64,000 nt of DNA from Fimbriosthenelais zetlandica (GCA_977030845.1 OZ365112.1:17236001-17300000); one strand, 5' to 3'. Positions 42,301 through 63,100 are shown, counted from the first letter of the stretch. Numbers and translations are program-made. The notes: generated by a model from the letters alone, not told the origin.

Positions 42301-45300
42301 TCAGCCATCCTAAAAGAAAGCCAGGGCGTAAAAACATGACCCTAAAGAGGCGAGAGGTAAGAGCTAAGTCGGGGCAGATTCAATTAGGTGAAATGGTAAA
42401 AGGAAATGTGAGAGATGGATGGGGGACGTCAGTGATGCGTCTTTTGATGTACACGGTGATAGACTGTATGAAGGAGTTAATGGGCTATGACATGACATAT
42501 ACTACTCACTGATAAGCTTTCACAAAGCCGTTTCAATTTCCACCACTGATCAGATGGATGGAGCTTCAGGTAGGGATCTGCCGAGGCAATGTTATTTGAC
42601 ACAGCTTATTTAATATAACTGTACAGAAACCCAGCTCCTGTCAAAATACTTCACAGCGATAAGGATCCTTATGACAAGCTTGAGAGAAAATACCAAGGCC
42701 TGCATAGGGTTTTGAATCACTATCTTTAATGACTTGAGCGTGATACGAGTAAAATGATCACCCAGGTCTGATTGTAAGGTCTCCAGTAAAACATGGCATA
42801 TATCCTGACATATCATTTCTGGTTATCAATGAGGTTGAGAGGGAAGGCGTAATTGAGGTTATCTACAACTGATGGACATTCATGCCAAACTGGGTCCAGG
42901 GAAGCTTCTGCTGGGTTTCAATACTGTCCTTCCATTAGCCCCACTGACCCAAGGGTCTCATGAAGCGACCTGTCGAGGGGCCATAAGGGCAATAGTGTCC
43001 TGTAAGGTGGGTTACATATTATACTGTGCTCACAAAATGCACCTGGAGGGTCAGGCAGTCCTGGCCTCTAGTTAAAAACTAAGGTCATTTCACTGTTCAG
43101 CCTGGATGGGCGACTTTAATGGGCAGTTTGACAGTAAATGTACATATTACGTCATGGGTATAAACACGCCCTCCAATCCTGTCAGTCAAAACTTGAAAAT
43201 GATGGAAGGACAGTTGCCTGTTTGTGCTCTGGTAAATTTTCAGTTCTTTCACAGCTTGAATAATTGTTATTAGAAAAAAAGAATAGGATCATGATCTGGT
43301 AGATGCTGCCCAGTTCAGTACCAGCCGGTTGGGCAGCACAAGAAAACTCCCATCACACTACTTCCAAAATTGTTTGGTAAACTATGGACTAAAGGTCAAA
43401 AGGATGGAGTGGCAGGTCCTGTGTAAAGGTCGAGTACCGAATAGAGAGACGCCTTCTCCTCCAGGTCTAATCATGCCAGGAACTCAGGTTCCCAGCCATC
43501 CTACAGAGTGGGCATGGACTAGACATATCAATGTCCGGCCGAGGAAATGTGAAAAGGGGGACCCCATCTCCATGTCACTCACAATAGGAAGTCCCGACCT
43601 GTTGATCAGGAAAGGCCTCACTTAGCAGAGATCTCTCAACATCTACGTGGGGGATACTTGCTTAAAAGTAAACACAGGTATATGAGACTTGGAGACATGG
43701 GTAAATTATGACATGGGTATTGCAAATGTACTCCAATCGAGTCAATTGGAATGCATACAGCAGAGTATAGGGAAATGCATATAGAGGATCTGTCTATGAC
43801 AGGAGGGAGAAGCAGCGGAATATTAACTTGTGGTTCACGTAAGCTCGTAAGATCTATAGTCCTGTCCTGGCCATTAAAGAGATTTATGGCAGACCCTGTT
43901 ATTAAGCACCAGTCATAGAATGGTCGGGGGAGAAAGGACGCGTGCCACAGGTAAGGCCACTTAGGTGGAGCAGCTTTAAGAGATTTCCAGAGATGTTTAA
44001 CAATGCCATGACCCAACGCCATCCTGTTAAACACTGCTTCCCCCATCTTGAAACCCATGGAAAACATTTGCAAAGCAAAGCAGAGTCCACTCCATCATAA
44101 TAGTGGCCATATTATGATGGGGAAAGGTTATAATATTGCACTGTATGGGCTTTTCAAGTTGAATCTTTGGGAATAAATTATCACTGGTCAATCTAAGAAT
44201 ATAGGGAGAATATATATGGGGATAGGTGTATGGGCATCAAATAATGTCCTTGATTTTGACACATCAAAAATCGTACTCTTCCGGAGGGCGTTCTAACTTG
44301 TGTGAAACCCTCGTAATTCCATTTAGAGCTTCAATATTGGTTTAGTAAAGTCCAGCATACAGAGAGGATTCCTGACCCCTTCACCTTTCACCATACCATC
44401 TGACCACTGGTCACTCACCCCAGGCTCAGTACTGACCGCTGGGATCAGGGCCAAGTGACCTGGACACTCGGTGGTGGACAAAAGGCCAGTGGTCACTCGT
44501 GGTGACAAAAGGGAAGAATTCAATGAGATACTCGGGGCAAATGGAATCACTACGACTAGAGCAAACAAAATAGGTTTTTCAGGGGTTAAAGTGGGTATCG
44601 TTAATGTGAATTTCATCCCGAGTCACATATTCTCAGTATAGCCAATATCACCCCCAAGTTCAGTTTGAAAAATTGCAATTATAAACTATTCTCCCATACT
44701 GTTAAGCTGAAACATCAATACCTGAGGGTAATTGAAGCAGCGTGGGAAAACAGAATAGGTGTTCCCATCTGAATGATACATAGCTGGCAGCCTCTAATAG
44801 CTTAATAACACGGCCCACACGGACCATGGTGTAAATGATGGAATGACACACATTTCCATGCTTCTCAACAGAGCCAACGACCATTTCTTATGCCTACATA
44901 CAGAGAGTATGTGCAAAAAAATGAAAACCCTAAGGAAATCGATGGATCCACCTACATTTGTGCAATACATCATACACACTTTGGCCAGACAGTGGAAGAG
45001 ATAGCAAGGGGATCATACACAATACATGCAGTGAAAAATCACAACAAGCTCGCCTTCACCGATTAAAGGGCTTCTCATATAATGCCTTCGAAAATTTACA
45101 CCCATTGTGCAAACATGAATGGAGGTCTTTACATGTAAAACATGGAATAAATTCTCACACATTTTAGTCATAAAACGTCGGTTATAATTCTGGCATTACC
45201 ATGGTCGGTATGATGTATTTGGTTGGATGGTAGGGATTCACAATGAGCGGGCCTGTTTATTGCCGTAGCCACTGTCTGGGCCTATATAGATAGTCCTACA

Positions 45301-48300
45301 TATTGGCGCAGCTGGAAGTCCTAGAAACGCAATAAAACCTTTGCCACTATCAGATATCTACAATGCATGGATGATATATTGCGTATATGTGAGACAAGTG
45401 GAAAGATGGCAGGAAGACGACACAATGCGTAGGGCACTAACTGATTACTAGAAATGGATGGGAAGGGGATCTGAAATTGTCTTTTACCAAGAAATGGTAA
45501 GCACTTTCCTCTGCCCATTACATTGAGTATTCAAAAACGAACATAACCCAAATGATGGATATAAATTCCATCCACAATTACAATCTTGATCAAAGTGTTC
45601 GATGAATACAAGGGCAAAGGAAATGGTTAACAACTAAATGCGTAAAAATCTGGTTTGAAGGGACTATGTTACGCTTAGTGGGGATATATATGGATGTGAG
45701 AGGGATGAGAATGAAGTGGGATGTAGGGTCAAGGGTGGAGTCAAGTGTTTACACTAAGCTATCAACTTGACAAGAACATTGGCGAGACACAGGGTTATAT
45801 CAAGATGACAAAGAAGACACTCCAACAGGCAGACTTTAGTGGTGTAAATAGATGTATAATGATCGTGGAAGGCGTATAATAGACATAACAGGTGGATAAC
45901 CCAGGGTGCCTTCCAAGGTTTTACTGGCACTAGCAGCATATTATTTAAACTAGATATCAGAGTAAATGGTTTGAGTTAATTTAACCATTGTACAAGGCAC
46001 ATTGATTTGATATTAATAAAAATATTCATTTTCATTACAGGTGGAAACCTCAAGAGGGCAGAGATGAGGAAATGACAGATAAGAACTGAGCAGTGAAGTG
46101 ATGGTCAGTGGATTGTGAGTTACTTTGTATCAGCGATGTAAAGCCCCACCATGATCAAACACATGTTTGTATTCGGGGTTATCATCCCCACCGCCATCAC
46201 CATCCTCCTCTTCATCGGTTTCCTTGTCTGCTGGTTCAAGTTCAACATGCGTGAACGTCTCTTCGCCAAGAAAAAGTTTTTCAGCAAGCAGATCAAGCAC
46301 GCCATGGCAGCTCACCAGACAAACGGCTCCAAGCAAAGTCACTACACGCCGGAGCAGACCAGTGGTGCCAGTGGTGGTGGCACCTCCAATAAAAGAGACC
46401 ACCACTCAGACCACCATTCTGGAGGTGGAGCCTCCTGTATCAATGTGCCTAGTATTAAACCTAAGAAACAAAAGCATTATGAGAACTGTGAAGACCATGA
46501 CAGTTACGTTGGGGAGGACCCTGAAGCTGCCCTCTGTACAGCCTGTGAGGATGAGCATCATAACAGCGCACTTGAAGGCTTCACAAACCCCAACCTTTGT
46601 GTGTCTCCATCTCATAGTGCAGACGGTGGAGATGAACAGACAGAAACTGAGGACCATACAGATAATGAGTCAGAGTGTGTTCATGTAAAGAAAGTGGGTT
46701 CTATGATACAACACACCTTCCATTTCCCCGCGTCTGAAGGTCCCCATCTCAGTAATAGCCTTGTAGTGGACTCAGAAGATGGGGGTTCAGAGGATGGAAA
46801 CTATGGACACTTTGTACCTTTATCCCAACTATTACTTGATCCCAAAGCAAAACAGTTTTACGCCGCAGCCAGGAATGGTTCAGATAGTCCGTGTGGGGAA
46901 CTGTCTGAAGGATTACAGAGTGCAGCTGCCTCCTCAGTCATAGCTTAGAGACAATGTTTCATTAAAAATATGAGTGTAAAAATGTGGATCAGCATGTGGG
47001 ATACACAACAGATTCCCATTAATTTTAAAGTCTGAAATTAAATTATTTTGTTCATAATATTCTACAGCCTCTTGAAACATGGGACGTGGCGAATACTGAC
47101 TATAGTTTTCACTCCAGAAAAGATATTTGTTATTATATTCATGAATGAATACACCCAGGTTCACGTCGTGCATTTAATTCACAACTGTATCTGATAAATG
47201 GAGAAGTTGCACTTTAATTCTGGTGTAAATGTCTCGTGCTATTCATTAAAGGGGAAGAGTAGGAGTTGGATCTGGTTAGATATATGTTCCCAGTCTCTCA
47301 CCATCTGATTAGCGATAAGCAAGCTGACATAAAGCATCCCTCTAACTACTTTGGAAACCATTTACCTTTCAGCAATCAATTCATGACTAAAGACAACCAT
47401 CCATCACGGTACAAAAGCCTTGCTACTCATACCATTACATCACCATAGATGGGCCGTACACCCCCACATAATATACAGATGTATCACCTCCCTCTCAAAG
47501 TGAATGCAAGAGAAATGAGACTGATTAACTTTTCCCCCATTGAAGTGGGAGCAGATTATATTCCCTAAAGCCTCCCAAGTATGAAATATGCCTACCAGCA
47601 GTGATGGATGATAATTTCTTGTAATATGTCAGCACCAGAGTGAATAAAACAGAAACATCCCTCCATGTCAATGACAAGAGTTTCTTTTCAAGGTCAGATA
47701 CATAATGATAATAACATTTTCCTCGTTTCACAGTCTGTCAGGACCTGACTGTCAGTTGAGTACGACATTGTCTTCGTGGGATCGCTAATGTTTCTGTATT
47801 CAAATCTGTTGCCACTGTTTTAATGAAGTCAAATAAGATTGAGTCAAATAACTTCATTTGTCAGATAAATGCGACATGTTGTAAATGGTGTATTATTTAT
47901 TGTAAATAAAAATGATGTTATATAGATAATTATATTGTGTGTATATAATACGGTAAGCTATGACACAAGATAGGCACAAATAGGGGCACTTTTTATCGAG
48001 TTGATGTAAGATCTTATGTTGGTACTCAAGCAGAGAACATAAAAATTAAACACAAAAGGAGTTAAGATGGTGACTTTAACTTTGAAAAACAACCATTTTA
48101 CGAGGTGACTTAGTTCCATTATAGACATGACAAGGCTTTAAACAACTTCTGTTTGCGAATCTGCGAAGTATCTCTTTTCAGAAACATTTGTAATTGTGGC
48201 ATTAAGAGTTTGCAGACGGTTTACTCCACCCCTTCTCAAGTACTTCTGACACCCCTTGATTTGGAGTGAATACTATATTGCCCATTTGTATACGCTGCTT

Positions 48301-51300
48301 GCTGCCCAGCGAGGCACGGCGTGGCAGGCTCTGAATTATTTATCATTCCAGACCCGTGTTCATAAGCACTGAACATGTTCCTGTCCCGCCATCCGATTTT
48401 TTCTCAGTTGAAAAAAATTAGGCCCTCCCCATAGCAATCGTAGAATCCATACATCCTCCAACACTACATGTGTATATGGTCACAGCCTTCCCACACCGAA
48501 ACAGATCTAACGACGTATGGCCCCTCCCATCAGTAGGTCAAAATACAATAATAATATCAATCCTAAATTTTCAGACATATTCAACTTGATAAAAAACACT
48601 TTCTAATATGAAAGAGGTCAGAGAAATATGGAGCAAGTTATCTTTTTTGTCTCCTACTTTTCACATGCGCTATAGGTACCCACCCAGTGTCAATAGCATG
48701 ACCTTACATGATGTTGGATATACCCGCTGCATTACGATTAGTTTCCCTTGTCTCTCCAAAACGTAAAGAATACCAAGCAGTGGAAGATGCATTATAAAAT
48801 GGATGGGTTAAGGAGATATAGATGCAGACAAACCATCTCGAAAAAAACACCTCATCCATACATAACTTTTAAAAAACTTATGAGTAGAATTATAATCTAA
48901 GTATCCATCAAAGTTATCAAGGCTAAAATTTAATATGAGGTCTGAAATTAATATTCCCATAAGTATCAATGAAGCAATATTCGTGCACTGCCCTTCCTTT
49001 TTCACCTTATTAAAAATCCCAACTGATTGCATAATGAAAGCGATGTAATTATGAGAGCGATGTAATTATGAATTTCCTTGACACAATAAGATAATATTCA
49101 AAGTATGATGATATACTGAGGGGAGAAATCTAATGTAATTGTATTGCCATGACACCAGAATAATGTGACGATATGTGTGGAGACTATGCTATGAGATGTA
49201 TAGTATTCAATGTAATAAAGTGTATTTTCAATGTACAAAACAACTCAGTATCTGTCTCCTCTTTTATACCATTTAATCCAATTGGAAACATAAATAATTT
49301 GGTGTATACGGTATTTTCCCAGGGCCTTAATTACAAGAGCCCTTAGTTACTAGAGGCTCAGTTGGATGTCTCAAGATAAAATAAGAATCCTAGACAACTA
49401 AGATGTTATCTGGAGACCCGTCCCTGCTTTGCTGGTATTGAGCCATGGTATTGTAAGAGAATCTACTCTCAGTATGGATAAAGATAAGGCTCGGTTTAGG
49501 AACACACCAAAGCTCGCCTTCTGGGCTGATAAGAATCAATCAACTGAGGATTGACACTGCTGTAGGCATCATCCAAAGGAAGCATACAATACAAAGATTG
49601 GTGTCACCACCAGCTTCTACTTAAAACCCTGCATCCATCCAAATACTTCGTATCGTGAGTGAGAATGGACCGAGGTTATTTAGCTTGAATGTGAGGGGAT
49701 GTATAAAGATGCGTTCAGGAGAAAATCAGAGTTCCCTGGGAATAGGAGAAGTGAAAGAGTAGATTCTTAATGAAGTGACAGAGCCATAAAGGTAGGGCTT
49801 CAGTAGGCCACTGGGGCAAATTACCTTCAAGCAACGTGGCTCGATCCTTCGCATTTAACAAAGATTTTAAGAGCGAATTGTCCTATTCAAAATTAATTGA
49901 ACATGGGGATAATGACACAGATACTCACAAGAAATACACAACTACTGGTGTTGACTCTCTCAATGACAGATATTACTTTCGAGGATAATGAGAGCAATTT
50001 TCTTGTTTGGAGAAATTTGAGTCTGATTCGTCTTCTAGTCCCATGAGGCCTATTTTCTAAAGATTCACCCGAAGCGGAGCCAAATGATGGATCCCCGAGA
50101 GGGGCAAGGTAAATTAAAAGCTTGTACAAATAGGCCCGGGGAGAGTAGAGTGTTTGAGTGGCTTTCATCTGAGTCTGAGTGACAAGCACAAAGTGGTTCA
50201 CTGCTTGCTTTTCTCTGATCTCCAAAAGCACGGGGTCGCGACTCTGAAGGTCCCCAGATGGCACGATGGGGCCTGGCGGAAGAGGAAATAGGTTGGCCTT
50301 TAATATTTCCTAAAATAAAGACAAAGATGACATGCCATATCTCCGGTACAAGGAGCAAGAAAAGAGAAAGGGGGAACGGATTTATGGCTTCAAAGATAAA
50401 AAGGCAGTATTTTGATACGCATGGTTGATCGAATTGCCTGTAATGGTTCAGATAAAACTGTTTCATCTGAAGCAGGGCTGGATTCATGATATTATGGAAT
50501 ACCAATCTGCAAGATTCATACTTCGACAGATGATAATCCTTTGCAGATGATACTGAACCCAAATTACATAATTCATCACCTCAGGGATTATGTTCAGACA
50601 TAAAGGGTGTGATCAAATACATCTCAAATTTAAATAATTAATGTCTCTTCGAATCCATCATTGGACATATCTGCGACAGACAGGGCCCTGTGGACTTGTA
50701 TCCATCATTGCCTGACAATCATCTCTCTCTGAATTCCCCAATCCTGTCATGCTGGAGGAAATTAGATTGTCTTGAGAAAGCAACAGATATACATCAAATA
50801 TGATTACAGCAGCGAGAAGAGCACGCCTGACTCGAGCTAAAATCCACTTTTCTTCCTAAAAAAGAAACAACACTAGCCAGTTGATGTTTTTTTCATTCCA
50901 GAAGCGAGTCATATAATGTCTCAGACTGACAAGAGATTAGAAATGTTTCCCTCTCCCACGAAGATCACATCTAAATGTCAGATACATGCATCAATGTCCT
51001 ACCTAAAAAGGCCAACATATGTATATCTCATATGTAATAAGAGGTCAGGTATATGTCGGGCAAAGTGCCTTAAGTGTTTACTGCCACAATTTTAGTTTGT
51101 GGGCAGAGGTAGGCCTGCACTGCACTATGTAAGATAAAGGAAAATCAACAACCTCAATCATGGCACAGGAGGAGGCAAGACATTTGAGAAAAGTTTTAAG
51201 TAGACCTACTCCATTTGGAATTTTTTCGACAAGAAAAGCAATGTCACCTTTAAAAGGAAAAACATGCTGCGAATGGTCTTGAAGTTAAGATATTTCAAAT

Positions 51301-54300: not shown

Positions 54301-57300
54301 TATCAGATGCTCGAAATAAACAAGAGAAAATATGTGACAGCGAAGTAATTTTCCAGACTGGTAAACAAACTGACCTTTCGCCAGAAGCGAAGGATTAAGA
54401 ATGGATTTTGCAAGATCAGGGCGAAATTAATGAACAGGCCACTTTATTAAGTGTCCTCACAACAGGCAGCCCATTAGGCAGGGTCAGCAGGTCTGAAGAC
54501 GAATGAGCAACAATCTACAGACAATTACTATAGAGACTCATTATACCCTTCATGTATGCCATTTGAGGCGGAGAAATTTGACATTCCAGGCAGAAAGATG
54601 AATGATGATTGATGGAATATGTTACGGGGATAAAAGTACCTACATCTAAGTCTGTACTTGTTCTCATATATTACTCGTATGTTACTCTTACAAAACTTGG
54701 GGAATAATCAGTTTTATTTGAGAGGCAGCGGAGGCCATATAGGAGCCTAAACCTACTGCATCAACAGACTTATCAGAAAGTCGTTAAACTAATGTGAAAC
54801 CAAGCATTGGACTAGTAAGGCCTAGGCTTCCCTTTATAATTAATCAACCTGACGAGGGAAGATTCTACTCAAGGCAAATAAAGGGCCACTTTTTCAAGCT
54901 TTATCAAGGGAAGGAAACATACCTCCCATTCCCTAATTAATCTATTCCTACAGGTCCTGTTTGAAGCTTGGGAATTTCCATATGGACGGAGCTGGTTGGA
55001 AATAAGCATGATTATTTCACAACAGTTAACAAGGACTGGCAGTCTCTGCTTCAAAGGTCCAGGGATGAAATCTTTACGTGCCAGAAGCATTCTCAGTCAG
55101 AAAATGATCGGCCAAAGTAGAGACCGGGTTCTTTCTTTCAAACTAGGTTCATTTATACAAAGAAAGCAAGTTTGGTTCCTTAAGGCAGGCAAGCTTCCTT
55201 GAAGATTTTCTTTCATGGAAGGATTAGAATAAATGACGAATAGTAGCGTATCATAATGAATCCACCCCACAAAAAGACTCAGCAAAAAGATCCAACAACT
55301 CAAACGTGAGTTCAGAGGCAGAGAAACTGATAATGGGAGATGCAGAGAAAGGCAATCAGGAACACAAGGATCAAGAGAAACCAATGGAGTGGAGCAGCAG
55401 GATTGGTAACATAAAAAGTAGCAATTTATCTTTAATTGCTATGTTTAATGAGCAGAAACTTAACGTGGATTACATGGAATGCCTTAAAGTCTTGCATGAA
55501 AGTAACATTCACATAAAAGAGATAATGTAATCCAAGAGAAGTTCCCAAACTCTTACTCTGGGAAAATAGACCGACTAGGAGAAGGTCTCTCTGAAAGACT
55601 ATTAAAAGAGAGTGAACATGTGTGTATCGCTCATAGAGCAGGGCTCCGTGCAATTCTGACCAGGTTCACTTTGAAGGCAGGGTATCGATCTGGGCTGGAA
55701 GCAGGGCTGGCTGGGGTTATAGAGGGGGTGATTCCCTCAGCTTTTATCGGCAATGTTTTACTTAAAGTTCCCCACACATCATGTAAATAGGCCTACAAAG
55801 AGGTTGAGAGGACAGACGCCTCCCTCTCAGAGGACCAATGCAAATTAGGGGTTTGAAATGGATTACAATGTGTAAAGACATATCTTCTCGTTCGACCTTT
55901 CCACACTTGGAAAATTTAACAAATTGACTCCATTCAAAATTCAAGGAAGTCAATAGGGAGAACAAATATGTCTCCAATGAAGTCAACATGTATGATGTGC
56001 TGAACAAGATGATAATTATCTTGTATCCAGCCAACTGCATCAGTATGAAGGAAAAGACTTGGTCTAAAGTCCAACATAGAGTTCTGAACGAAAGTAGGAC
56101 CCAAGGACAATAATAAGCAATGCATATTTATGGGTCTCTCATTGGAAGGTGCAGACTTAATGTCATTACCGCTTCGTGATTAACTCTGAGTTACTCAATG
56201 AGGCACAGGTTGTAAAGGTAGAAACACACTTAGACATGCGAGAAAATCATAACACATTACTACCACTTCACCGCCGCTAAGCCCCACGCCTATAGAAAGC
56301 TAACACTAAACCAAAAGAAAGAAATGCAATTAGACAGGCTCATAATAGAGGGATTGAAGGCGTTCTCCCGGCTTTATTACTGATTTATCAAGCAGGGGGA
56401 ATTACTCTTTCATTAAGGGCAATAAACTTTATCTAATTTGCTTACAGACACGCATAGAGATGAACAAGGACAGTAAAACGTAGATTGGTGTCCTTCCTGA
56501 AAGCCCCTTGCATGTTCATATTTTAGAGCCAACTGGTCTAATGGAGCATCCGAAAACGCTTTACATTGCCGTGAATCAATAATGAATAAGGAAAGCTAAT
56601 AGAAAAATGGCAAAAACTGAATTATTATTATAGACAGTAAGCCAATCTACCTTTATGGTTCGTGCAAGCTTTAAGTAAGTGGGAAATGGGATTTCGCAAC
56701 ATGAGCAATAAAGTAGAATTTGATGTTGTGTGCAGAAGTAGGTAGAGTGAATTGGAGGTGGCCCTGTAATATAGAGATACGGAAGGCACCTGAAAAGTAC
56801 ATCCCAGGTTCCATAATCAAATAGCTTTGTTCTGAACCTATACTTCAAGGCAATGGTGTCAAATTTCGAATCATAACTGAAGCTTTCCAAACAAACAACT
56901 ACTACCTGACATTCTGAAAGCTAAAAATACAATAGCTAACCTAATAGGAATTAATAAGTCAGAGAAGGAAGATCATATTGACGAGGAAGGATTTGTGAGA
57001 ATCCATTCCTCGACACTCACAAATCCTTCCTCGACACAACTTTTACCTCAGTACAACGACTCAGATGAGATAAAGGAGAAAACCAACATGATAGAACAAA
57101 TGCAAAGAGGCGATACAATTTGACATAATTATCCCAGCAGAGCAAATCAACTGCGAGAGCTTCAATTATCGATGTGTTATCACCTAATTCATTCTCCTCC
57201 CATTATCACATCACTGTCACAAATGAGCGTGGAGGACAAGATGCCAGTTGAAAAAAACACTGTACGCAGTTTGGTAATGGGTGCAGTGGAAACAGGGGTT

Positions 57301-60300
57301 ATTTAATAAGAAGGGCTATATATTTATAAGAGTGAAAAGCTCTGGGTCGGAGGCTTCCCCTCCTGCTGACTTACCTAAACACCTTTGTTAGTAAGAAAGC
57401 AATAATGAGAAGTGATGTCTGCCTCGTCTAATAAACTCTAATCACTGCACTTAATTAAAGTTGCGAGGTAGCGGCTAAAGGTAGGCAGCTCCCTTGGTGA
57501 TAAGATATATTATCCCTAACTCACCGAGCACATGTTAAATGCTGGAACGTAGCATAAAATCCCATTATATGGGAATAATTTACTAACACAGAAACTCGGC
57601 AAGCTAATTGTTTCTATGGACCTAATGGCGGTTCACAATGTGAACATATCTTTCTCGATTAATAATGTAAGAGACATTTCGCCATTAAATGCAAAATAAA
57701 TGCTTTCGTCCTCAGGAAATGTTCCATGGCAGTGTTTAGTATGTCTGTGGAAATGCAGAGCAGTGGAATTCATTGGAACGAACAACTAAATGAACCAAGT
57801 TATCTCTCATATTGTCACACTGTGCATCTTCCACAAAAAAGTAAAAATATAGAAGTATCTTACTGTGGCTCATTTATAGCAGGCATGGCGACAGCCAAGT
57901 TCTGAAGCGATATGACTTTATGCGTTGGTGTGTCAAACTAATGATATGCCTGAATACAACTACAGAAAATTGCATACAGCGATGGTGTTAGAACTAAGGG
58001 CAAACGACAAGTACGAAGATGGAAATAGACAGTGAGATAATGTTAAATGTAAGGATGAAAGCAGCTGCTGCTGATTGTGTATTACAGTTGTCAGAATGAA
58101 TACTGGAGCCTACTGGATGAGTAGACCACCATACAACCAACATAGACAGTATGTACAGACTGTTAAAGGTAGAGACTACATGAAGGCTATATGTGTACAT
58201 ATATGGAATATCTCGGTTTTATGAAGAAGGTAACTTAGCCAGACAATACATCATAACATGTCAAGTAAAGTTTGCATTCCCTGTACAACACATCTCATAT
58301 GTATAATTCATGACAATAGAAAAAGATATATGGAAAAGACATCAGTCAGCGAAAAGGCTTACTGTTAATGCGGGGCGATGTGAAGGAGGGATAAGCTAAT
58401 ACCCTATCCCAACACACAAAATGGTCACTTATACTTATTACAAATAATAGTTAAGCCGCTGAAAGGAAATGTAGAAATACCACTGAAAACAAATATGTTA
58501 GCAAAGTGTAAAGTATAGGACACTAACCTGTGGGAAGTACTGTGAGAGCCTCTTCATATACTGTGTAACACAAATCCTCTGCTTCTACGTTCATCGATCC
58601 TAATTTTAGAGACAAAAGTGTTAATATAATAACTCAGACACCAGCAGCCGAAATGTGATAATATTATATGTGGAAAACTTCAACCTAAAATTTACACCTA
58701 CCATTTTCCTGACCTCGGCCAGTGGAATGATTCTCTAGATGTCTTCTTGCAAGGGCGTCCCATGTCTTCTCCGAGTTATGATGGAATAGCTTCAAGCTGG
58801 AAAATAGTAACAATACACCGTCACAGAATTACCCCTTTATGTTCTATATTAGTTTGATTTCAAACTGACAAATATTTTAAAAGCTATACAAACATGTCAT
58901 AATAGAGTTGTTCCCTACTCCCAACAGTTGGACGCCCTGAACTGTGTAGGCAAATCTTACAAGGGCCTGTGATGTAACAGGCTCATAGCCAAACAATCAT
59001 ACCTAACTTGATACCCCCGAAATTACCCAGATCAGAGATTGTTTGGTTATGAGCCTGATATAGTAGAGACCCTTCTTGGCTTTGCCTCTGCAGTTCAGAA
59101 CGTCCAACTGTTGGGAATAGGGAACAACTCTAATAGAAACTGAATATTTCAGATAGTTATAACAATAATTCATTCACACATTTCAATACATTAATATCAC
59201 TTACTGGTCGAAAATATGATCCGCCAAGCTTTTGGCAAATGGGAAGTCTTTAAGTATGGGAAGAAAGGCCAAAACAAAGTCGATAACATCTGTAATAGAA
59301 AATACACTCCCTGAATCAAATGACATCATGGATATTATCAAGCTTTAAGGGCGATGGATTAAGAAATTTACTTCGTCAGAGGAAACTTAACAGCAGAGTC
59401 AGTTGTGAACAACAGTAAGCTATGAAAATAAGTAAGTTAACGAAATATATATATATTATAGTAAGGAATACAACAGTGGCAAAAAAGACATACTTGGGAC
59501 TTGGTCTACAGCCTGTTGGAATACTACTTCAGCAATCTTTCCATCCACTACCACATCAGCTGTTTCTGAATCATCCTACAAATCATAAGTTGAGAAGTAA
59601 TATATTTTAATATTACAAACGTTCTTTATGCATTTAGATAATATTCAATCAATCATAAGTCAGAAAGCCAATGCCTTCATATCCACATTGATATTGCTTA
59701 GAAATAATAAGCTTAAGATGGGAACAACCAATGTTGCATGCCAATATATATGCAAAACTTACAACATCCATAAGTGCAATACCAAGGACCTCTCTTCGTT
59801 TCTTCAACTGTAAAAAAAAATCGCATGAATTAATAGGTAAATTAAATTGACCAGTAATTATATTCACACATATGGTATATATTTTGGTGATCCTTCAAGT
59901 TAATTACCCATTTCGGTTTAATAAAGAAGCCGTAGTTAATTTGTATTCGATTAAACTGACGACAGTACCTTATCAACGTTGAGTAGCTCCATTCGAAAAT
60001 ACTAAAATAGAAAATGGGTAATAGGTTCATAAAAAGTTGTAAAATTGAACACAACATTTATACATAAAACATAAACTCACCCTACAATAAGAGCTGAATG
60101 TATTAGACAGTAAATTCAAGCATAACATTTCATCAGGGTGTCAATGATTCTGGATTACCTCAATCCACAATTTCTGTGACTCGGGCAAGAATCGTAGCCC
60201 CCTCTGGAGTAAATTGCGAGCATTCTCCATCGATGCGTTAGTCTCTATTTCCCACTTGGCAGCAGCGATCCAGAGAGCTGAAAGTTTAACAGAACATCAA

Positions 60301-62407
60301 TTAAAACCTTTCCTAAATTTTCATCAGGCTTCGTGAAATGACAAGTTTCCTGGGATATTGTCTCTTGGCAGCATTCAATTTTCAAATTCAAAATGATTGG
60401 TAAAGGAATTCTCACCAGGTTTTCTCGTATGTATTTGTAACATCCTAGTGAAGATATTACTCACGGCCGACTTATGATTCTGTTAAAGAAAGAAATCATA
60501 TCTAATATCTACTGAATATGGGGAAGTTCTCCTCTCCCAAATCAAGAGAAGAATCAAAGAATGTTCTACCGGTATAATAGACAGGAGATCATAGTGGAAA
60601 ACAAATAATACACAATTAAAACTCCAGTTAATCACTAAACCAAGATAAGTTCTTACCCTGCTTTTGGCGAACCCCACATGTGAGAGCCACAGCTTTGTGT
60701 CCTCCTAATAAAAGACACGAAGACAATTATTTTACATACCGGTAACATAAAGATCCAATTTGACAGTATCATCAATCCTTGCTAAATAATTGTGTTCAGA
60801 CAGTATTAGTTGTTTTGTTCATACTTACTTGAAAACGAGAACATGCTATCTGCAAAGAGATGAAAAAAAAATCCCAGAATTAACCATTGTCTCCCATGCT
60901 TTATGTACGAGCAAAGAAAATACATCCAGATAAAATTTTACAAGTATACATAAGACAACTCAAGTAAAGTGGGTAAAATTTCCTTACCCCGAAGAGGCGA
61001 TGGACTCGATTTACAATCGCAAAATCTATTTCTTTCACCTTGAATTTGTAGCCAGTGTCCTGGTTAATTAAAAGAAATCGATAGGTAATAAGACAGATGT
61101 AATATAACTATTTTAAGATTATACAGACATAAAGTGTAAAAGTGAAAACATGTTCACCAAGATATAGTACTCAGAACATTCTACATTGGACAACTTAATT
61201 CATAGCCAAAGGAAAGAATATAATACTTCAATATTCTGCTATATTAGACACAGGTATTACTTATAAATGTATCTCCTTTAATACAAATGATCCAATAACA
61301 ATAATGACTAATTCTAAATGTACTAGGGCATCCTCACCTCTCTCCGCTTCATTAACAAAGCGTGCAAATTGATTTCATACTGAAAATTGATAAAAACAAA
61401 TGGTTAACTTGGGGACAGATCGAATACACAAACAGTAGGCCTATATTTTATATTTGAGTCATCTTACAGTCTATCTTCGCTGGTATCCACACGAAAATAA
61501 TTATACCAGTAAAAAGTGTTTTTCTCCAGCACATAAGGGGCGACCATTAGAACACCATTTTGTCTGGACATGGTAATTCTATTTATTTCAGAATCCTGAT
61601 GGACAACATCCATTTTTCACACGACATTATTTATCTCAGAAATAATCCAGGGGCCCCGGGCCCTGGTATTCTAATGGTCGCCCCCTAATTAAGCCTACAA
61701 AATTAATAGTGCTCACTAAAAATACTTAGGATGGCCAATAAACACAATTAAATTCGTCAAAATAGACATAATCATCAATTACATTTTGTATACCGTACCA
61801 TACGTAATATTTAAGTAATATTTACTTGGATATACTGAAGTAAGTCCTCCTTCTCTTTCGTTTGCCTTTGTAGTTTATATTCAAACGCTTTCCGCTTCTT
61901 CAATATAGATCTGCCAAGAATGTGTTACATTTTTAAATGGCATTATTATTCGTGACTATAACTAAAGTCTGTTCAAAATAAGTTGATCCCATATTGACAG
62001 TGCAGTACATTTACTAGATCTACACTAGTCTATAATACGGTACCTACCGGTATAGTAAAGTAAAGTGGGATCAACTTATTATGAACAGACTAAATTTAGT
62101 GTACATAAGAAAATGATATATTCGTCACGTTAGCTTAAACGAATGTAGTGTCATAAAAAATAGCCATTAAAATTAATAACAGGTGACTTAACAGCTGAGC
62201 CTGTACAGCCTACAGTCGGGTGTCACCCCACGGGAGGGAACCGCTTCTTGACCAGTCAACATTACAAGTCTACCGTCTGTATTGGCCGATATATACCAGG
62301 CCCTATTAAACTCACCTTGTCTCAGCCCCAGTGAATAGTTTTACGCGTGCCATCTGCTCTACCTCCTCGAGCATTTCTTCGAGGTTCTTCTGTACAAACT
62401 CCGCCAT
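275..62407 (-). CDS. UTP6: U3 small nucleolar RNA-associated protein 6 homolog (HAT-repeat SSU processome/UTP-B subunit); spliced, 16 exons in window, 3' end runs off the left edge
   Basis: join(62407-62316, 61910-61826, 61379-61338, 61059-60988, 60849-60829, 60704-60657, 60479-60416, 60277-60159, 60001-59969, 59807-59763, 59575-59494, 59289-59205, 58796-58702, 58599-58528, 8083-8010, 352-275) = 1107 nt with no stop and all GT-AG. Translation MAEFVQKNLEEMLEEVEQMARVKLFTGAETRSILKKRKAFEYKLQR...KLWLSHVGF...ALWIAAAKWE...NARNLLQRGLRFLP...YFRMEL is collinear with human UTP6 as I recall it (MAEIIQERIEDRLPELEQLERIGLF...LWIMAAKWE...ARQLFLRALRFHP...YFRMEL). Confidence 0.95.
1790..1801 (+). repeat. G12 homopolymer
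   Basis: Twelve consecutive G. Confidence 0.9.
5466..5500 (+). repeat. (GAATT)n microsatellite preceded by AATAAA; typical LINE/SINE 3' tail
   Basis: AATAAA 5466-5471, then GAATT x5 + GAAT at 5472-5500. Confidence 0.8.
6730..6850 (+). mobile_element. Possible RTE-clade LINE reverse-transcriptase fragment
   Basis: Translation VIDDFMTM*AEQE*PGDEMLV*VDDIVVS resembles the RTE consensus VMDRLTDEVRQESPWTMMFADDIVI; flanks do not extend the match. Confidence 0.3.
8010..8083 (-). CDS. UTP6: UTP6 exon 15 (74 nt)
   Basis: ctttgtatctatttcag|DLMWTFYLTTCLEFLDSSTSESFRK|gtaact; correct phase to follow exon 14; matches recalled EAMWKCYITFCLERF. Confidence 0.87.
10100..11600 (-). mobile_element. Second, deleted DIRS1-like remnant; limits approximate
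   Basis: ELKWV then MNASHAGC (~10955-11030, cf. L.WW...TDAS..GW); GLYASP (~10838-10857, cf. LYAFPP); TQACSIPQ...ETLPDRADIF (~10608-10700, cf. TQPWFPQL...LP.R.DLL); SIASLGMICHACPMH (~11270-11320, cf. SIDLKDAYFHIPIH). Confidence 0.4.
23364..23830 (-). mobile_element. Decayed apurinic-endonuclease region of a non-LTR retrotransposon (CR1/L1-like)
   Basis: GSLNTRGL at 23791-23817 (cf. SLN.RGL), then DCPGQQVGCSIALWEE (cf. DR...GGGVALY) and INLYG / YFQQPP in ORF 23364-23579. Confidence 0.35.
28487..28507 (+). repeat. G12 homopolymer plus adjacent G6 run
   Basis: ggggggggggggagagggggg. Confidence 0.9.
46021..46150 (+). promoter_or_regulatory. Splice acceptor (AG at 46039-46040) and 5' UTR with four uORFs of the nested gene
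   Basis: aatattcattttcattacag|gtgg. uORFs at 46064-46075, 46072-46089, 46101-46118 and 46136-46141 (ATG-TAA). Confidence 0.55.
46151..46948 (+). CDS. Uncharacterised 265-aa single-pass membrane protein (N-terminal signal anchor, long disordered cytoplasmic tail), nested antisense in UTP6 intron 14
   Basis: Longest ORF in the window. Kozak-like gccccaccATG. The first ~70 codons end mostly in C/G, unlike the AT-rich flanks. Hydrophobic run FVFGVIIPTAITILLFIGFLVCWF (aa 6-29) is followed by basic RERLFAKKKFFSKQIK. Splice acceptor ttttcattacag|G at 46040/46041 upstream; AATAAA downstream. Confidence 0.75.
   Translation: MIKHMFVFGVIIPTAITILLFIGFLVCWFKFNMRERLFAKKKFFSKQIKHAMAAHQTNGSKQSHYTPEQTSGASGGGTSNKRDHHSDHHSGGGASCINVPSIKPKKQKHYENCEDHDSYVGEDPEAALCTACEDEHHNSALEGFTNPNLCVSPSHSADGGDEQTETEDHTDNESECVHVKKVGSMIQHTFHFPASEGPHLSNSLVVDSEDGGSEDGNYGHFVPLSQLLLDPKAKQFYAAARNGSDSPCGELSEGLQSAAASSVIA
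47905..47910 (+). terminator. Candidate polyadenylation signal of the nested gene
   Basis: AATAAA about 960 nt after the stop, in an AU-rich stretch (tattatttattgtaaataaaaatg) followed by TG/T-rich sequence; another AATAAA lies near 47643. Confidence 0.4.
49039..49071. repeat. 17-bp tandem duplication
   Basis: agcgatgtaattatgag agcgatgtaattatga. Confidence 0.85.
49300..54250 (-). mobile_element. Heavily degenerate DIRS1-like tyrosine-recombinase retrotransposon; limits approximate
   Basis: Motif remnants in DIRS order on the minus strand, across many stops and frameshifts: PW/VVLEIL (~52245-52280, RT N-terminus); HLKYLNFKTIRS and KGD (~51240-51300); HLDVIF (~50960-50980) and CFFLG (~50860); RNase H MDTSPQGP (~50676-50705, cf. 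TDAS..GWG) and RRDINYLNL (~50626-50651, cf. HINYLEL); methyltransferase-like FYLNHY...AINPFPLSL (~50360-50460); YR-like LKFLQ and LPQWP further left. Confidence 0.55.
56982..57033. repeat. Perfect 18-bp inverted repeat with 16-nt loop
   Basis: cgaggaaggatttgtgag (56982-56999) / ctcacaaatccttcctcg (57016-57033). Confidence 0.9.
58528..58599 (-). CDS. UTP6: UTP6 exon 14 (72 nt)
   Basis: aaattag|GSMNVEAEDLCYTVYEEALTVLPT|gttagt; matches recalled CCAVYEEAVKTLPT. Confidence 0.92.
58702..58796 (-). CDS. UTP6: UTP6 exon 13 (95 nt; an alternative in-frame donor would end it at 58714)
   Basis: ctattttccag|HLKLFHHNSEKTWDALARRHLENHSTGRGQEN|gtaggt; TWDALARR matches recalled human TWDYVARR. Confidence 0.88.
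58903..59132. mobile_element. Fold-back MITE with ~100-bp imperfect terminal inverted repeats in UTP6 intron 12
   Basis: Left arm tagagttgttccctactcccaacagttggacgccctgaactg...caggctcatagccaaacaatc; right arm reverse complement tagagttgttccctattcccaacagttggacgttctgaactg...caggctcataaccaaacaatc; TA (or AAT) at both ends. Confidence 0.75.
59205..59289 (-). CDS. UTP6: UTP6 exon 12 (85 nt)
   Basis: ttctattacag|NVIDFVLAFLPILKDFPFAKSLADHIFD|gtaagt. Confidence 0.9.
59494..59575 (-). CDS. UTP6: UTP6 exon 11 (82 nt)
   Basis: gatttgtag|DDSETADVVVDGKIAEVVFQQAVDQVP|gtatgt. Confidence 0.9.
59763..59807 (-). CDS. UTP6: UTP6 exon 10 (45 nt)
   Basis: tttttttttacag|LKKRREVLGIALMDV|gtaagt. Confidence 0.9.
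59969..60001 (-). CDS. UTP6: UTP6 exon 9 (33 nt)
   Basis: ctattttag|YFRMELLNVDK|gtactg; read-through hits TAA after 5 codons. Confidence 0.9.
60159..60277 (-). CDS. UTP6: UTP6 exon 8 (119 nt), HAT repeat
   Basis: ctttcag|ALWIAAAKWEIETNASMENARNLLQRGLRFLPESQKLWIE|gtaatc. Confidence 0.96.
60416..60479 (-). CDS. UTP6: UTP6 exon 7 (64 nt)
   Basis: ctttaacag|NHKSAVSNIFTRMLQIHTRKP|gtgaga. Confidence 0.93.
60657..60704 (-). CDS. UTP6: UTP6 exon 6 (48 nt)
   Basis: cttttattag|EDTKLWLSHVGFAKSR|gtaaga. Confidence 0.95.
60829..60849 (-). CDS. UTP6: UTP6 exon 5 (21-nt micro-exon)
   Basis: ttttttttcatctctttgcag|IACSRFQ|gtaagt; supplies the 7 residues missing between RLFG and EDTKLW relative to the recalled human sequence. 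Confidence 0.85.
60988..61059 (-). CDS. UTP6: UTP6 exon 4 (72 nt)
   Basis: aaccag|DTGYKFKVKEIDFAIVNRVHRLFG|gtaagg. Confidence 0.92.
61338..61379 (-). CDS. UTP6: UTP6 exon 3 (42 nt)
   Basis: ttttcag|YEINLHALLMKRRE|gtgagg. Confidence 0.95.
61537..61685. mobile_element. PIF/Harbinger (Tourist-like) MITE in UTP6 intron 2
   Basis: About 21-bp TIRs ggggcgaccattagaacacca / tggtattctaatggtcgccccc; TAA on both sides (61534-61536, 61686-61688), the typical TWA target duplication; no ORF. Confidence 0.75.
61826..61910 (-). CDS. UTP6: UTP6 exon 2 (85 nt)
   Basis: ttcttggcag|...SILKKRKAFEYKLQRQTKEKEDLLQYIQ...|gtaaat. Confidence 0.95.
62316..62407 (-). CDS. UTP6: UTP6 exon 1 (92 nt CDS)
   Basis: ATG at 62407; MAEFVQKNLEEMLEEVEQMARVKLFTGAET(R); donor AAG|gtgagt. 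Confidence 0.95.
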
Positions 62408-63100
62408 GTCGTTGGTTATTTATTTCCCTTTAGAAGCTTAGAGAGTTATTCAGATATTCCACACGTGCTTGAGCGATAGTAGAAGCCGACCGGAAGTCAG
62501 GTTGTGGAAAAAGGGGTGAAAGCGCAGCTGGCTCTGACTCACACCAGTTACAACGGGAGATAGCCAGATGGTGCTGCCACTTCTCATAATTAGAAGGAAC
62601 TACCGGCATGACCTGATGGCAAGAATAGTATAGCCAGCCTACTACCCTAGGCCTATATATTTCATACATTTACTGATCATTAGGCCGAGATTCATACTGA
62701 CTGTGGCGGTAGGCCTAAGCCATAGTTCCCGCTTTGTCGGCTAGGTGGCGTAGGCTACGTAATGGTGCCCTTAGGTCACCAGCGTCTGGTTGACCAATAA
62801 GAACGGAGAACCGCGTCTAACCAATCAGAGCAGGTGGCGCTCTTTCCACGAGGCTATGATTTTATCGCCTCCATTTTGTCTCGCTCAGTTTTTTGCCAAA
62901 TTCGGATAGAAAAACTTAACAAAGCCCGGAAAAGTTATATAATTCGGATTAAGCGAAGTCTCATGTTCACCCAGGATACAATTTTGATCGACGGTCGATA
63001 TGCTGAACGCCGCGAGGACGAGGAAAAAAAAGAGTCTACCGACTTGGCAACTTTGCCGGAAGTGGAGTAAACACATTGCGCGATTGTAGCAGGACGTGTT
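62408..63100. promoter_or_regulatory. CpG-rich, probably bidirectional promoter of UTP6 and a divergent + strand gene
   Basis: CACGTG E-box 62462-62467; ETS sites ACCGGAAGT 62489-62497 and CCGGAAGT 63056-63063; CCAAT boxes 62794-62798 and 62821-62825; elevated CpG. Confidence 0.65.

Follow-up and report, generated by a model that had tools for sequence, protein, structure and literature searches.

Transmembrane adaptors of the LAT/PAG kind are, to our knowledge, described almost solely from vertebrate immune cells. The members LAT, NTAL, PAG and LIME carry a juxtamembrane CxxC palmitoylation motif, and LAT and NTAL have several YxN motifs. The present work deals with an open reading frame (ORF) at 46151-46948, on the plus strand of a 64,000-nucleotide stretch from Fimbriosthenelais zetlandica (GCA_977030845.1 OZ365112.1:17236001-17300000), the whole of which is referred to as the window. 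In the initial annotation this ORF had been taken for an orphan gene, antisense inside UTP6, encoding a LAT/PAG-like transmembrane adaptor. The ORF is a genuine, constrained protein-coding gene, and its product belongs, by sequence comparison, to an unnamed family whose named members are all from the Spiralia. The favoured reading, held with a probability of roughly 0.55, is that the product would act as a membrane-tethered scaffold whose disordered tail serves for docking.

The evidence for the gene comes from the reading frame itself, from its relatives and from the pattern of substitutions, the latter expressed as the ratio of nonsynonymous to synonymous divergence (dN/dS).

46151-46948, plus strand: complete coding sequence, 265 amino acids and a stop, with homologues down to 30% identity, a dN/dS of 0.052 and a single copy in the genome

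The 265 codons form a single coding exon, opened by an ATG with A at -3, and the position, length and Kozak-like start were as first described. An in-frame TAA stands three codons 5' of the ATG, and no open frame in the window is longer than this one, which has 268 codons from stop to stop (the runner-up has 183 codons); in 200 first-order Markov copies of the window the longest frame measured 155 +/- 20 codons and reached 229 at most. A word-indexed search retrieved 11 relatives of the protein, ranging from 88% to 30% identity and including a hypothetical protein of Paralvinella palmiformis, and an exhaustive profile search gave 66 proteins at E ≤0.001, 39 of them below 1e-10. With at least 66 relatives, the term orphan was mistaken. 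Compared with the 88%-identical relative at locus L006, dN/dS was 0.052 at a dS of 1.3, in keeping with the value below 1 expected of a gene; by part, it amounted to 0.039 in codons 1-45, which hold the helix, and to 0.048 in the disordered tail. DNA similarity between the window and L006 is strong over the ORF alone, the flanks holding a few patches of 70-74%. The ORF is regarded as a real coding gene because of its homologues at 88-30% identity, its low dN/dS and its non-aligning flanks. One copy is present in the genome, in which no paralogues were found.

The same data bear on the proposal that no independent gene exists here, the frame having arisen by chance or forming the final exon of some larger type I receptor. 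An AG at 46142-46143, between the 5' stop and the ATG, could be taken as a splice acceptor in its favour, but it has no pyrimidine tract, and the in-frame stop and the dN/dS of 0.05 at a dS of 1.3 also speak against the proposal. Moreover, nine homologous loci from different species have an ATG, either the called one or another close by in the same frame, with which M-I-x-H-[MV]-F begins immediately 5' of the helix, and in every locus compared the similarity to the window starts at that ATG or a few bases upstream. The RefSeq models of the distant members from Lingula and Physella start a few residues ahead of the helix and, like the Paralvinella gene model, describe stand-alone proteins. Since the start site is shared among homologous loci and RefSeq models, a last exon of a known large type I receptor, the escape route left by the initial annotation, is very unlikely, and the proposal as a whole retains next to no probability. 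A single-exon coding sequence is also found in L001, L002, L008, L010 and L013.

As a side observation, dS against L006 is 0.47 in codons 1-45 (46151-46285) and 1.65 in the remaining gene, a difference that hints at extra nucleotide-level constraint and covers 45 codons only.

Named members of the family have been located in annelids (Paralvinella palmiformis KAK2154427.1, of the core subgroup and with 30% identity, and Owenia fusiformis CAH1793561.1), in bivalves (Sinanodonta, Mizuhopecten LOC110457516 and Mytilus), in the gastropod Physella acuta (LOC131946864), in the cephalopod Sepia pharaonis (CAE1150224.1), in the brachiopod Lingula anatina (LOC106162705) and in the flatworm Macrostomum lignano (PAA57702.1). 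All of them are labelled hypothetical or uncharacterised, and most relatives are found only in unannotated assemblies. The N-terminal helix block, all 8 positions of which are present in the window protein, is what every member has in common. Among the named relatives of core type the closest one, the Paralvinella protein of an annelid, likewise has a single-exon coding sequence and tail islands of the FHFP and DYGHF type. The mollusc subgroup, in contrast, carries the islands HDPHG, YHDSGMSEL and DSEDSGFRSS and the end [FY]SVV in place of the tail motifs of the window protein.

That no known family would be recognised was borne out. A Pfam scan of the ORF protein at E up to 1 gave only a sub-threshold match to AF-4, Pfam searches with ten distant relatives gave no known domain, a profile search of PDB gave nothing relevant, and a literature search under the family's locus names and accessions found no paper. 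Core-type members are also present in metagenomes of marine plankton, on short contigs (L010-L012; TARA Oceans and others), so that the gene is carried by some planktonic animal.

Within the protein, the N-terminal part accounts for the membrane anchor.

46166-46237, plus strand: membrane helix, residues 6-29, from conservation, 100-degree periodicity, AlphaFold2 and hydropathy
46229-46231, plus strand: Cys27, candidate S-acylation site, invariant in 45 sequences
46238-46285, plus strand: basic juxtamembrane flank, net charge +5, pointing to an N-out/C-in orientation by the positive-inside rule

After five N-terminal residues, residues 6-29 form one hydrophobic segment of 24 amino acids (mean Kyte-Doolittle value 2.5), with no second such segment in the tail. 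Cys27 lies within LVCWF, at the cytoplasmic end of the helix, and the 16 residues that follow the helix bear the net charge of +5. Among 45 sequences F6, G9, P13, F21, F24 and C27 do not vary, and more than 95% retain T17 and W28; the conservation of helix and cysteine had been named in the initial annotation as a point to check. The conserved positions recur every 3-4 residues and, as the periodicity of the conservation is strongest at 100 degrees per residue, they fall on one face of an alpha-helix. AlphaFold2, run with the family alignment, models a helix over residues 2-52, with a predicted local distance difference test (pLDDT) score of 94-98 over residues 1-30. The layout initially described, with a tiny N-terminal stub, one helix, a distal Cys, a basic flank and a disordered tail, is borne out. 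Because the basic residues follow the helix, the positive-inside rule would give a single-pass N-out/C-in topology with a cytosolic tail; the high hydrophobicity would favour the secretory pathway over an anchor in the mitochondrial outer membrane.

An N-terminal hydrophobic segment ahead of an acidic, low-complexity tail would also be expected if residues 1-29 served as a signal peptide that is cleaved off, leaving an acidic, His-rich disordered protein to be secreted. Short length and poor conservation are typical of signal peptides, however, and the segment in question has 24 residues and, with its 8 invariant or near-invariant positions, is better conserved across phyla than any other part of the protein; furthermore, the basic residues come after it and not ahead of it, and the AlphaFold2 helix runs on to residue 52. 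Secretion is therefore considered highly improbable.

The tail, of about 220 residues, is acidic, rich in His, Ser and Gly, and disordered. Outside residues 2-52 the AlphaFold2 model contains two short helices, at residues 224-227 and 231-242, with a pLDDT of about 80; the remainder is coil with a pLDDT below 60. Several islands can be distinguished along it:

46478-46489, plus strand: YENC, an instance of Y-x-N-hydrophobic (Grb2-SH2-type consensus)
46514-46537, plus strand: island EDPEAALC; D123 is invariant in alignment A1 and C129 is present in 23 of 32
46577-46612, plus strand: island GFTNPNLCVSPS, whose Ser-Pro is retained by most members
46703-46729, plus strand: island MIQHTFHFP; T189, H191 and F192 are invariant in alignment A1; fits F-x-F-P (ERK DEF-type)
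46766-46822, plus strand: acidic DSED..SED run followed by NYGHFVPL; D207, Y218, G219 and F221 are invariant; fits Y-x-x-hydrophobic
46820-46876, plus strand: short predicted helices, residues 224-227 and 231-242 (AlphaFold2 pLDDT about 80)
46931-46945, plus strand: C-terminal SSVIA; a hydrophobic last residue is frequent in the family

The islands of the core subgroup can be written as EDPEAALC, GF.NPNLC.SPS, QHTFHFP and DSED..SED-NYGHFVPLSQ, followed by the short helix. Two of them, Q[HQ]TFHFP and [ND]YGHF after a DSE..ED run, are both in the window protein, and QHTFHFP together with NYGHF is found in most core members. The F.FP pattern, which corresponds to FHFP at residues 190-193 of the window protein, occurs in 20 of the 30 non-redundant core members against 0.4 expected.

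All five tyrosine motifs first listed, YTPE (residue 65), YENC (110), YVGE (119), YGHF (218) and YAAA (237), are in the sequence, as is the SSVIA end, and their conservation differs widely. Tyr218, in YGHF, is the only invariant tyrosine; YTPE, YVGE and YAAA are not conserved. As for YENC, the view that it is specific to one clade was dropped, since Y-x-N-[CVLIAMF] recurs in 12 of the 30 diverged core members. Shuffled tails gave 2.8 +/- 1.5, and 0 of 500 shuffles reached 12. When all 20 residues were tried at position +2 of Tyr, Asn was a clear outlier, with 12 occurrences against 2.3 expected. Most carriers are no more than 35% identical, and the motif falls mostly in one segment, after the helix and ahead of the EDPEAALC island. 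The YEN motif, put forward as a feature to be conserved, has accordingly turned out to be one instance of a motif that is recurrent in the family and not universal.

Two further observations concern the tails of relatives. The protein P0039 (L022:5001-7283) has 760 amino acids and six tandem repeats of about 124 amino acids, with EGNYQHYIPLSQ in each repeat; its resemblance to EDGNYGHFVPLSQ of the window protein may mean that the same docking motif has been reused, or may be due to chance. In the mollusc relatives P0036-P0038, P0043, P0060, P0071, P0072 and P0080-P0089, two DSGxxS-like motifs (DSGMSE and DSGFRS) are present, a pattern that we take to be that of the beta-TrCP degron, and the mollusc subgroup strictly retains the [FY]SVV C-terminus, a look-alike of class I PDZ ligands.

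Taken together, helix and tail suggest how the product might work. It would be a single-pass protein with about five residues outside and its C-terminus in the cytosol, and the near-invariant helix face would pack against another membrane helix, belonging either to a partner protein or to a second copy. Cys27 would probably be S-acylated, and the disordered tail would offer short docking motifs to cytosolic proteins. The proposed docking sites are the YxN-hydrophobic motif, the Ser-Pro, QHTFHFP (of the FxFP type), the acidic run with NYGHFVP (of the YxxPhi type), the short helix and the hydrophobic C-terminus. The links from motif to partner follow the general consensus patterns for SH2, ERK-DEF, YxxPhi and PDZ recognition. 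The gene, its family, the features that set the topology, the disorder and the conservation of the motifs are shown by the data, and the partners, the acylation and the cellular compartment are put forward as proposals.

Several points weigh against such a scaffold. Matches to short motifs are easily obtained and name no partner. Y-x-N-hydrophobic is absent from 18 of the 30 core members. In ERK substrates FxFP usually lies 6-20 residues C-terminal to the Ser/Thr-Pro acceptor, whereas here some 40 residues separate it from the conserved Ser-Pro (residues 151-152). Resemblances to known proteins in language-model feature space reach scores of at most 0.91 on few shared features and serve as leads only. 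Finally, a helix so strongly conserved is just as compatible with a role as accessory subunit in a membrane complex.

This last point leads to the main alternative, in which the protein would be an accessory or regulatory component of some membrane complex, be it a channel, a transporter, a receptor or endoplasmic reticulum machinery. It would bind there through the helix face, and its tail would mainly carry signals for trafficking and turnover: the acidic cluster and YxxPhi for sorting by adaptor complexes, and the hydrophobic C-terminus for binding to PDZ scaffolds. Across the subgroups, including those whose tails have nothing in common, no part of the protein is more strongly conserved than the helix, and its conservation is one-sided. 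An acidic cluster followed by YxxPhi is the layout of cycling membrane proteins, which the acidic run and Y-G-H-F fit, and the [FY]SVV end and the two DSGxxS-like motifs of the mollusc subgroup agree with signals of this kind. The extended invariance of N-Y-G-H-F-V-P, on the other hand, exceeds what YxxPhi sorting needs. A subunit with sorting signals is considered possible, if doubtful, and the membrane-tethered scaffold is kept as the preferred reading.

A special case of the membrane scaffold is a palmitoylated, LAT/NTAL-like adaptor, in which Tyr110, Tyr218 or both would be phosphorylated by Src- or Syk-type kinases, recruit SH2 proteins of the Grb2/Drk type and feed into Ras-ERK, with FxFP as an ERK docking or feedback site. 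The excess of Y-x-N-hydrophobic (12 of 30 against 2.3-2.8 expected), the preference for Asn at +2 and the placement of the motif mostly in one segment among carriers of low identity speak for such an adaptor. An acidic run often precedes the Tyr in substrates of tyrosine kinases, as it does at the invariant Tyr218; Cys27 is invariant as well, and LIME1, SCIMP and PAG are found among the feature neighbours. Against it stand the lack of a Pfam match to LAT, PAG, LIME or NTAL, the single Cys in place of CxxC, and the one YxN instead of the several in LAT and NTAL, together with the majority of members that lack YxN-hydrophobic. In the P0004-P0007 clade, in addition, x-K-N-[LC]-E is retained in a form that lacks the Tyr, which suggests that the core of the motif can do without it, and the mollusc subgroup shows no enrichment. 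This phosphotyrosine version is put forward tentatively, as something that may apply and more probably does not.

With regard to its genomic setting, the ORF lies antisense inside UTP6, as had been proposed, in an intron region of roughly 60 kb.

58526-62419, minus strand: 5' half of the host gene UTP6, 3.9 kb, about 11 exons by eye, from PF08640, the HAT exon and exon-like frames

The Pfam domain U3_assoc_6 (PF08640; the UTP6 N-terminal domain) matches 61814-61912 on the minus strand, its sole match in the 447-Mb genome, and the HAT exon at 60144-60296, on the same strand, matches residues 141-182 of human UTP6 and 146-186 of yeast Utp6; these are the two exons with a tool match, the others in the 5' half having been recognised by eye. 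On the same contig and strand, UTP6_C was matched twice ahead of the window start, at a distance of 3.2 kb by profile positions 70-138 and of 6.9 kb by positions 231-261, and these two matches are the only ones in the genome; profile positions 1-69 and 139-230 were not located by Pfam matches. The nested antisense position follows from these minus-strand UTP6 domain matches, which flank the ORF on both sides. UTP6 is at least 69 kb long, with its first half in 3.9 kb.

From 58526 to the next detected UTP6 exon, about 3.1 kb before the window start (position 17232879, minus strand), there is a gap of about 60 kb. The frames 49718-49882, 46937-47173, 57020-57202, 58526-58633 and 43639-44094 were tried as 3' exons of UTP6, but searches of PDB with them gave no UTP6, and the matter was decided by the UTP6_C matches beyond the window; the TPR-like frame 46937-47173 (minus strand), which adjoins the ORF, was also rejected as an exon, not being conserved in L006. 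Among the homologues, no UTP6 exon was seen within 10 kb in L001 and L002, nor in the flanks of 3.4 kb and 8.4 kb in L008, all of them short compared with a 60-kb intron, and the Paralvinella homologue has no annotated host gene at its locus.

Around the coding sequence a few candidate elements of the transcript have been noted.

46026-46040, plus strand: pyrimidine-rich tract ending in CAG, 110 nt 5' of the ATG, a candidate 3' splice site of an intron in the 5' untranslated region (UTR), from sequence

Comparable pyrimidine-tract/CAG sites are located 85-130 nt 5' of the ATG in L006, L001 and L009, which suggests a transcript with a 5'-UTR intron whose 3' splice site would be at 46026-46040. 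A minimal ATG-TAA upstream ORF occupies 46136-46141, ending 9 nt 5' of the main ATG; ATGTAA is found at equal distance in L006 and is absent from more distant homologues. Three non-coding patches (45725-45858, 47275-47465 and 48186-48305) are about 70-74% conserved with L006, with a similar score in all frames, and may represent UTR or regulatory sequences belonging to the nested gene; an Rfam search of 44000-50000, these patches included, gave no match. The relatives' contigs L003, L006, L007 and L009-L013 were rejected as transcript evidence, as they have no poly(A) tails. In cephalopods, contigs of five runs have their ends within about 50 nt of one another, which hints at mRNA from a distant relative and at nothing further.

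The interest of these results is twofold. The family offers a concrete, conserved and testable candidate for a LAT/PAG-type adaptor in worms, molluscs, brachiopods and flatworms, with C27, Y110, Y218, FHFP and G9/P13/T17 as points that can be mutated, and the conservation of its helix across phyla would imply a specific membrane partner. Even if the adaptor reading fails, it is a family without a Pfam entry whose members are easily missed by annotation, and the locus shows cleanly how a gene can be nested, in antisense orientation, within a single huge intron of a housekeeping gene that is compact elsewhere.

Set beside LAT, LAT2/NTAL, PAG1/Cbp, LIME1 and SCIMP, the window protein shares the very short outside stub, the one helix, the distal Cys, the basic flank and the disordered tail with Tyr motifs, the YxN type included. 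Unlike the vertebrate adaptors, it has no detectable homology to them (Pfam LAT, LAT2, PAG and LIME1) and a single Cys near the helix end, and unlike LAT and NTAL it has one invariant Tyr and one recurrent YxN. Moreover, the helix of this spiralian family is far more conserved than its tail, and its named members are confined to spiralians. What stands of the LAT/PAG-like designation is thus the layout, the recurrent YxN and the invariant Tyr218; the sequence relationship, the CxxC and the conservation of YTPE, YVGE and YAAA do not. It is conceivable, though unlikely, that spiralians independently evolved an acylated adaptor analogous to LAT/NTAL, in which YxN, the NYGHF Tyr and FxFP would couple a receptor, bound through the helix face, to Grb2-Ras-ERK. 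In language-model features, the clusters of LIME1, SCIMP and PAG are neighbours with scores of 0.84-0.87, to be taken as leads only; A36, LIME1 and opalin are neighbours of both the window protein and the mollusc relative P0043, and UL135, SCIMP and PAG are neighbours of P0043. The top or near-top places (0.88-0.90) are held by Vaccinia A36 (OPG164) and human cytomegalovirus UL135, which have the same layout of anchor and docking tail but no sequence similarity and few shared features, and we read this likeness as one of architecture, not of kinship.

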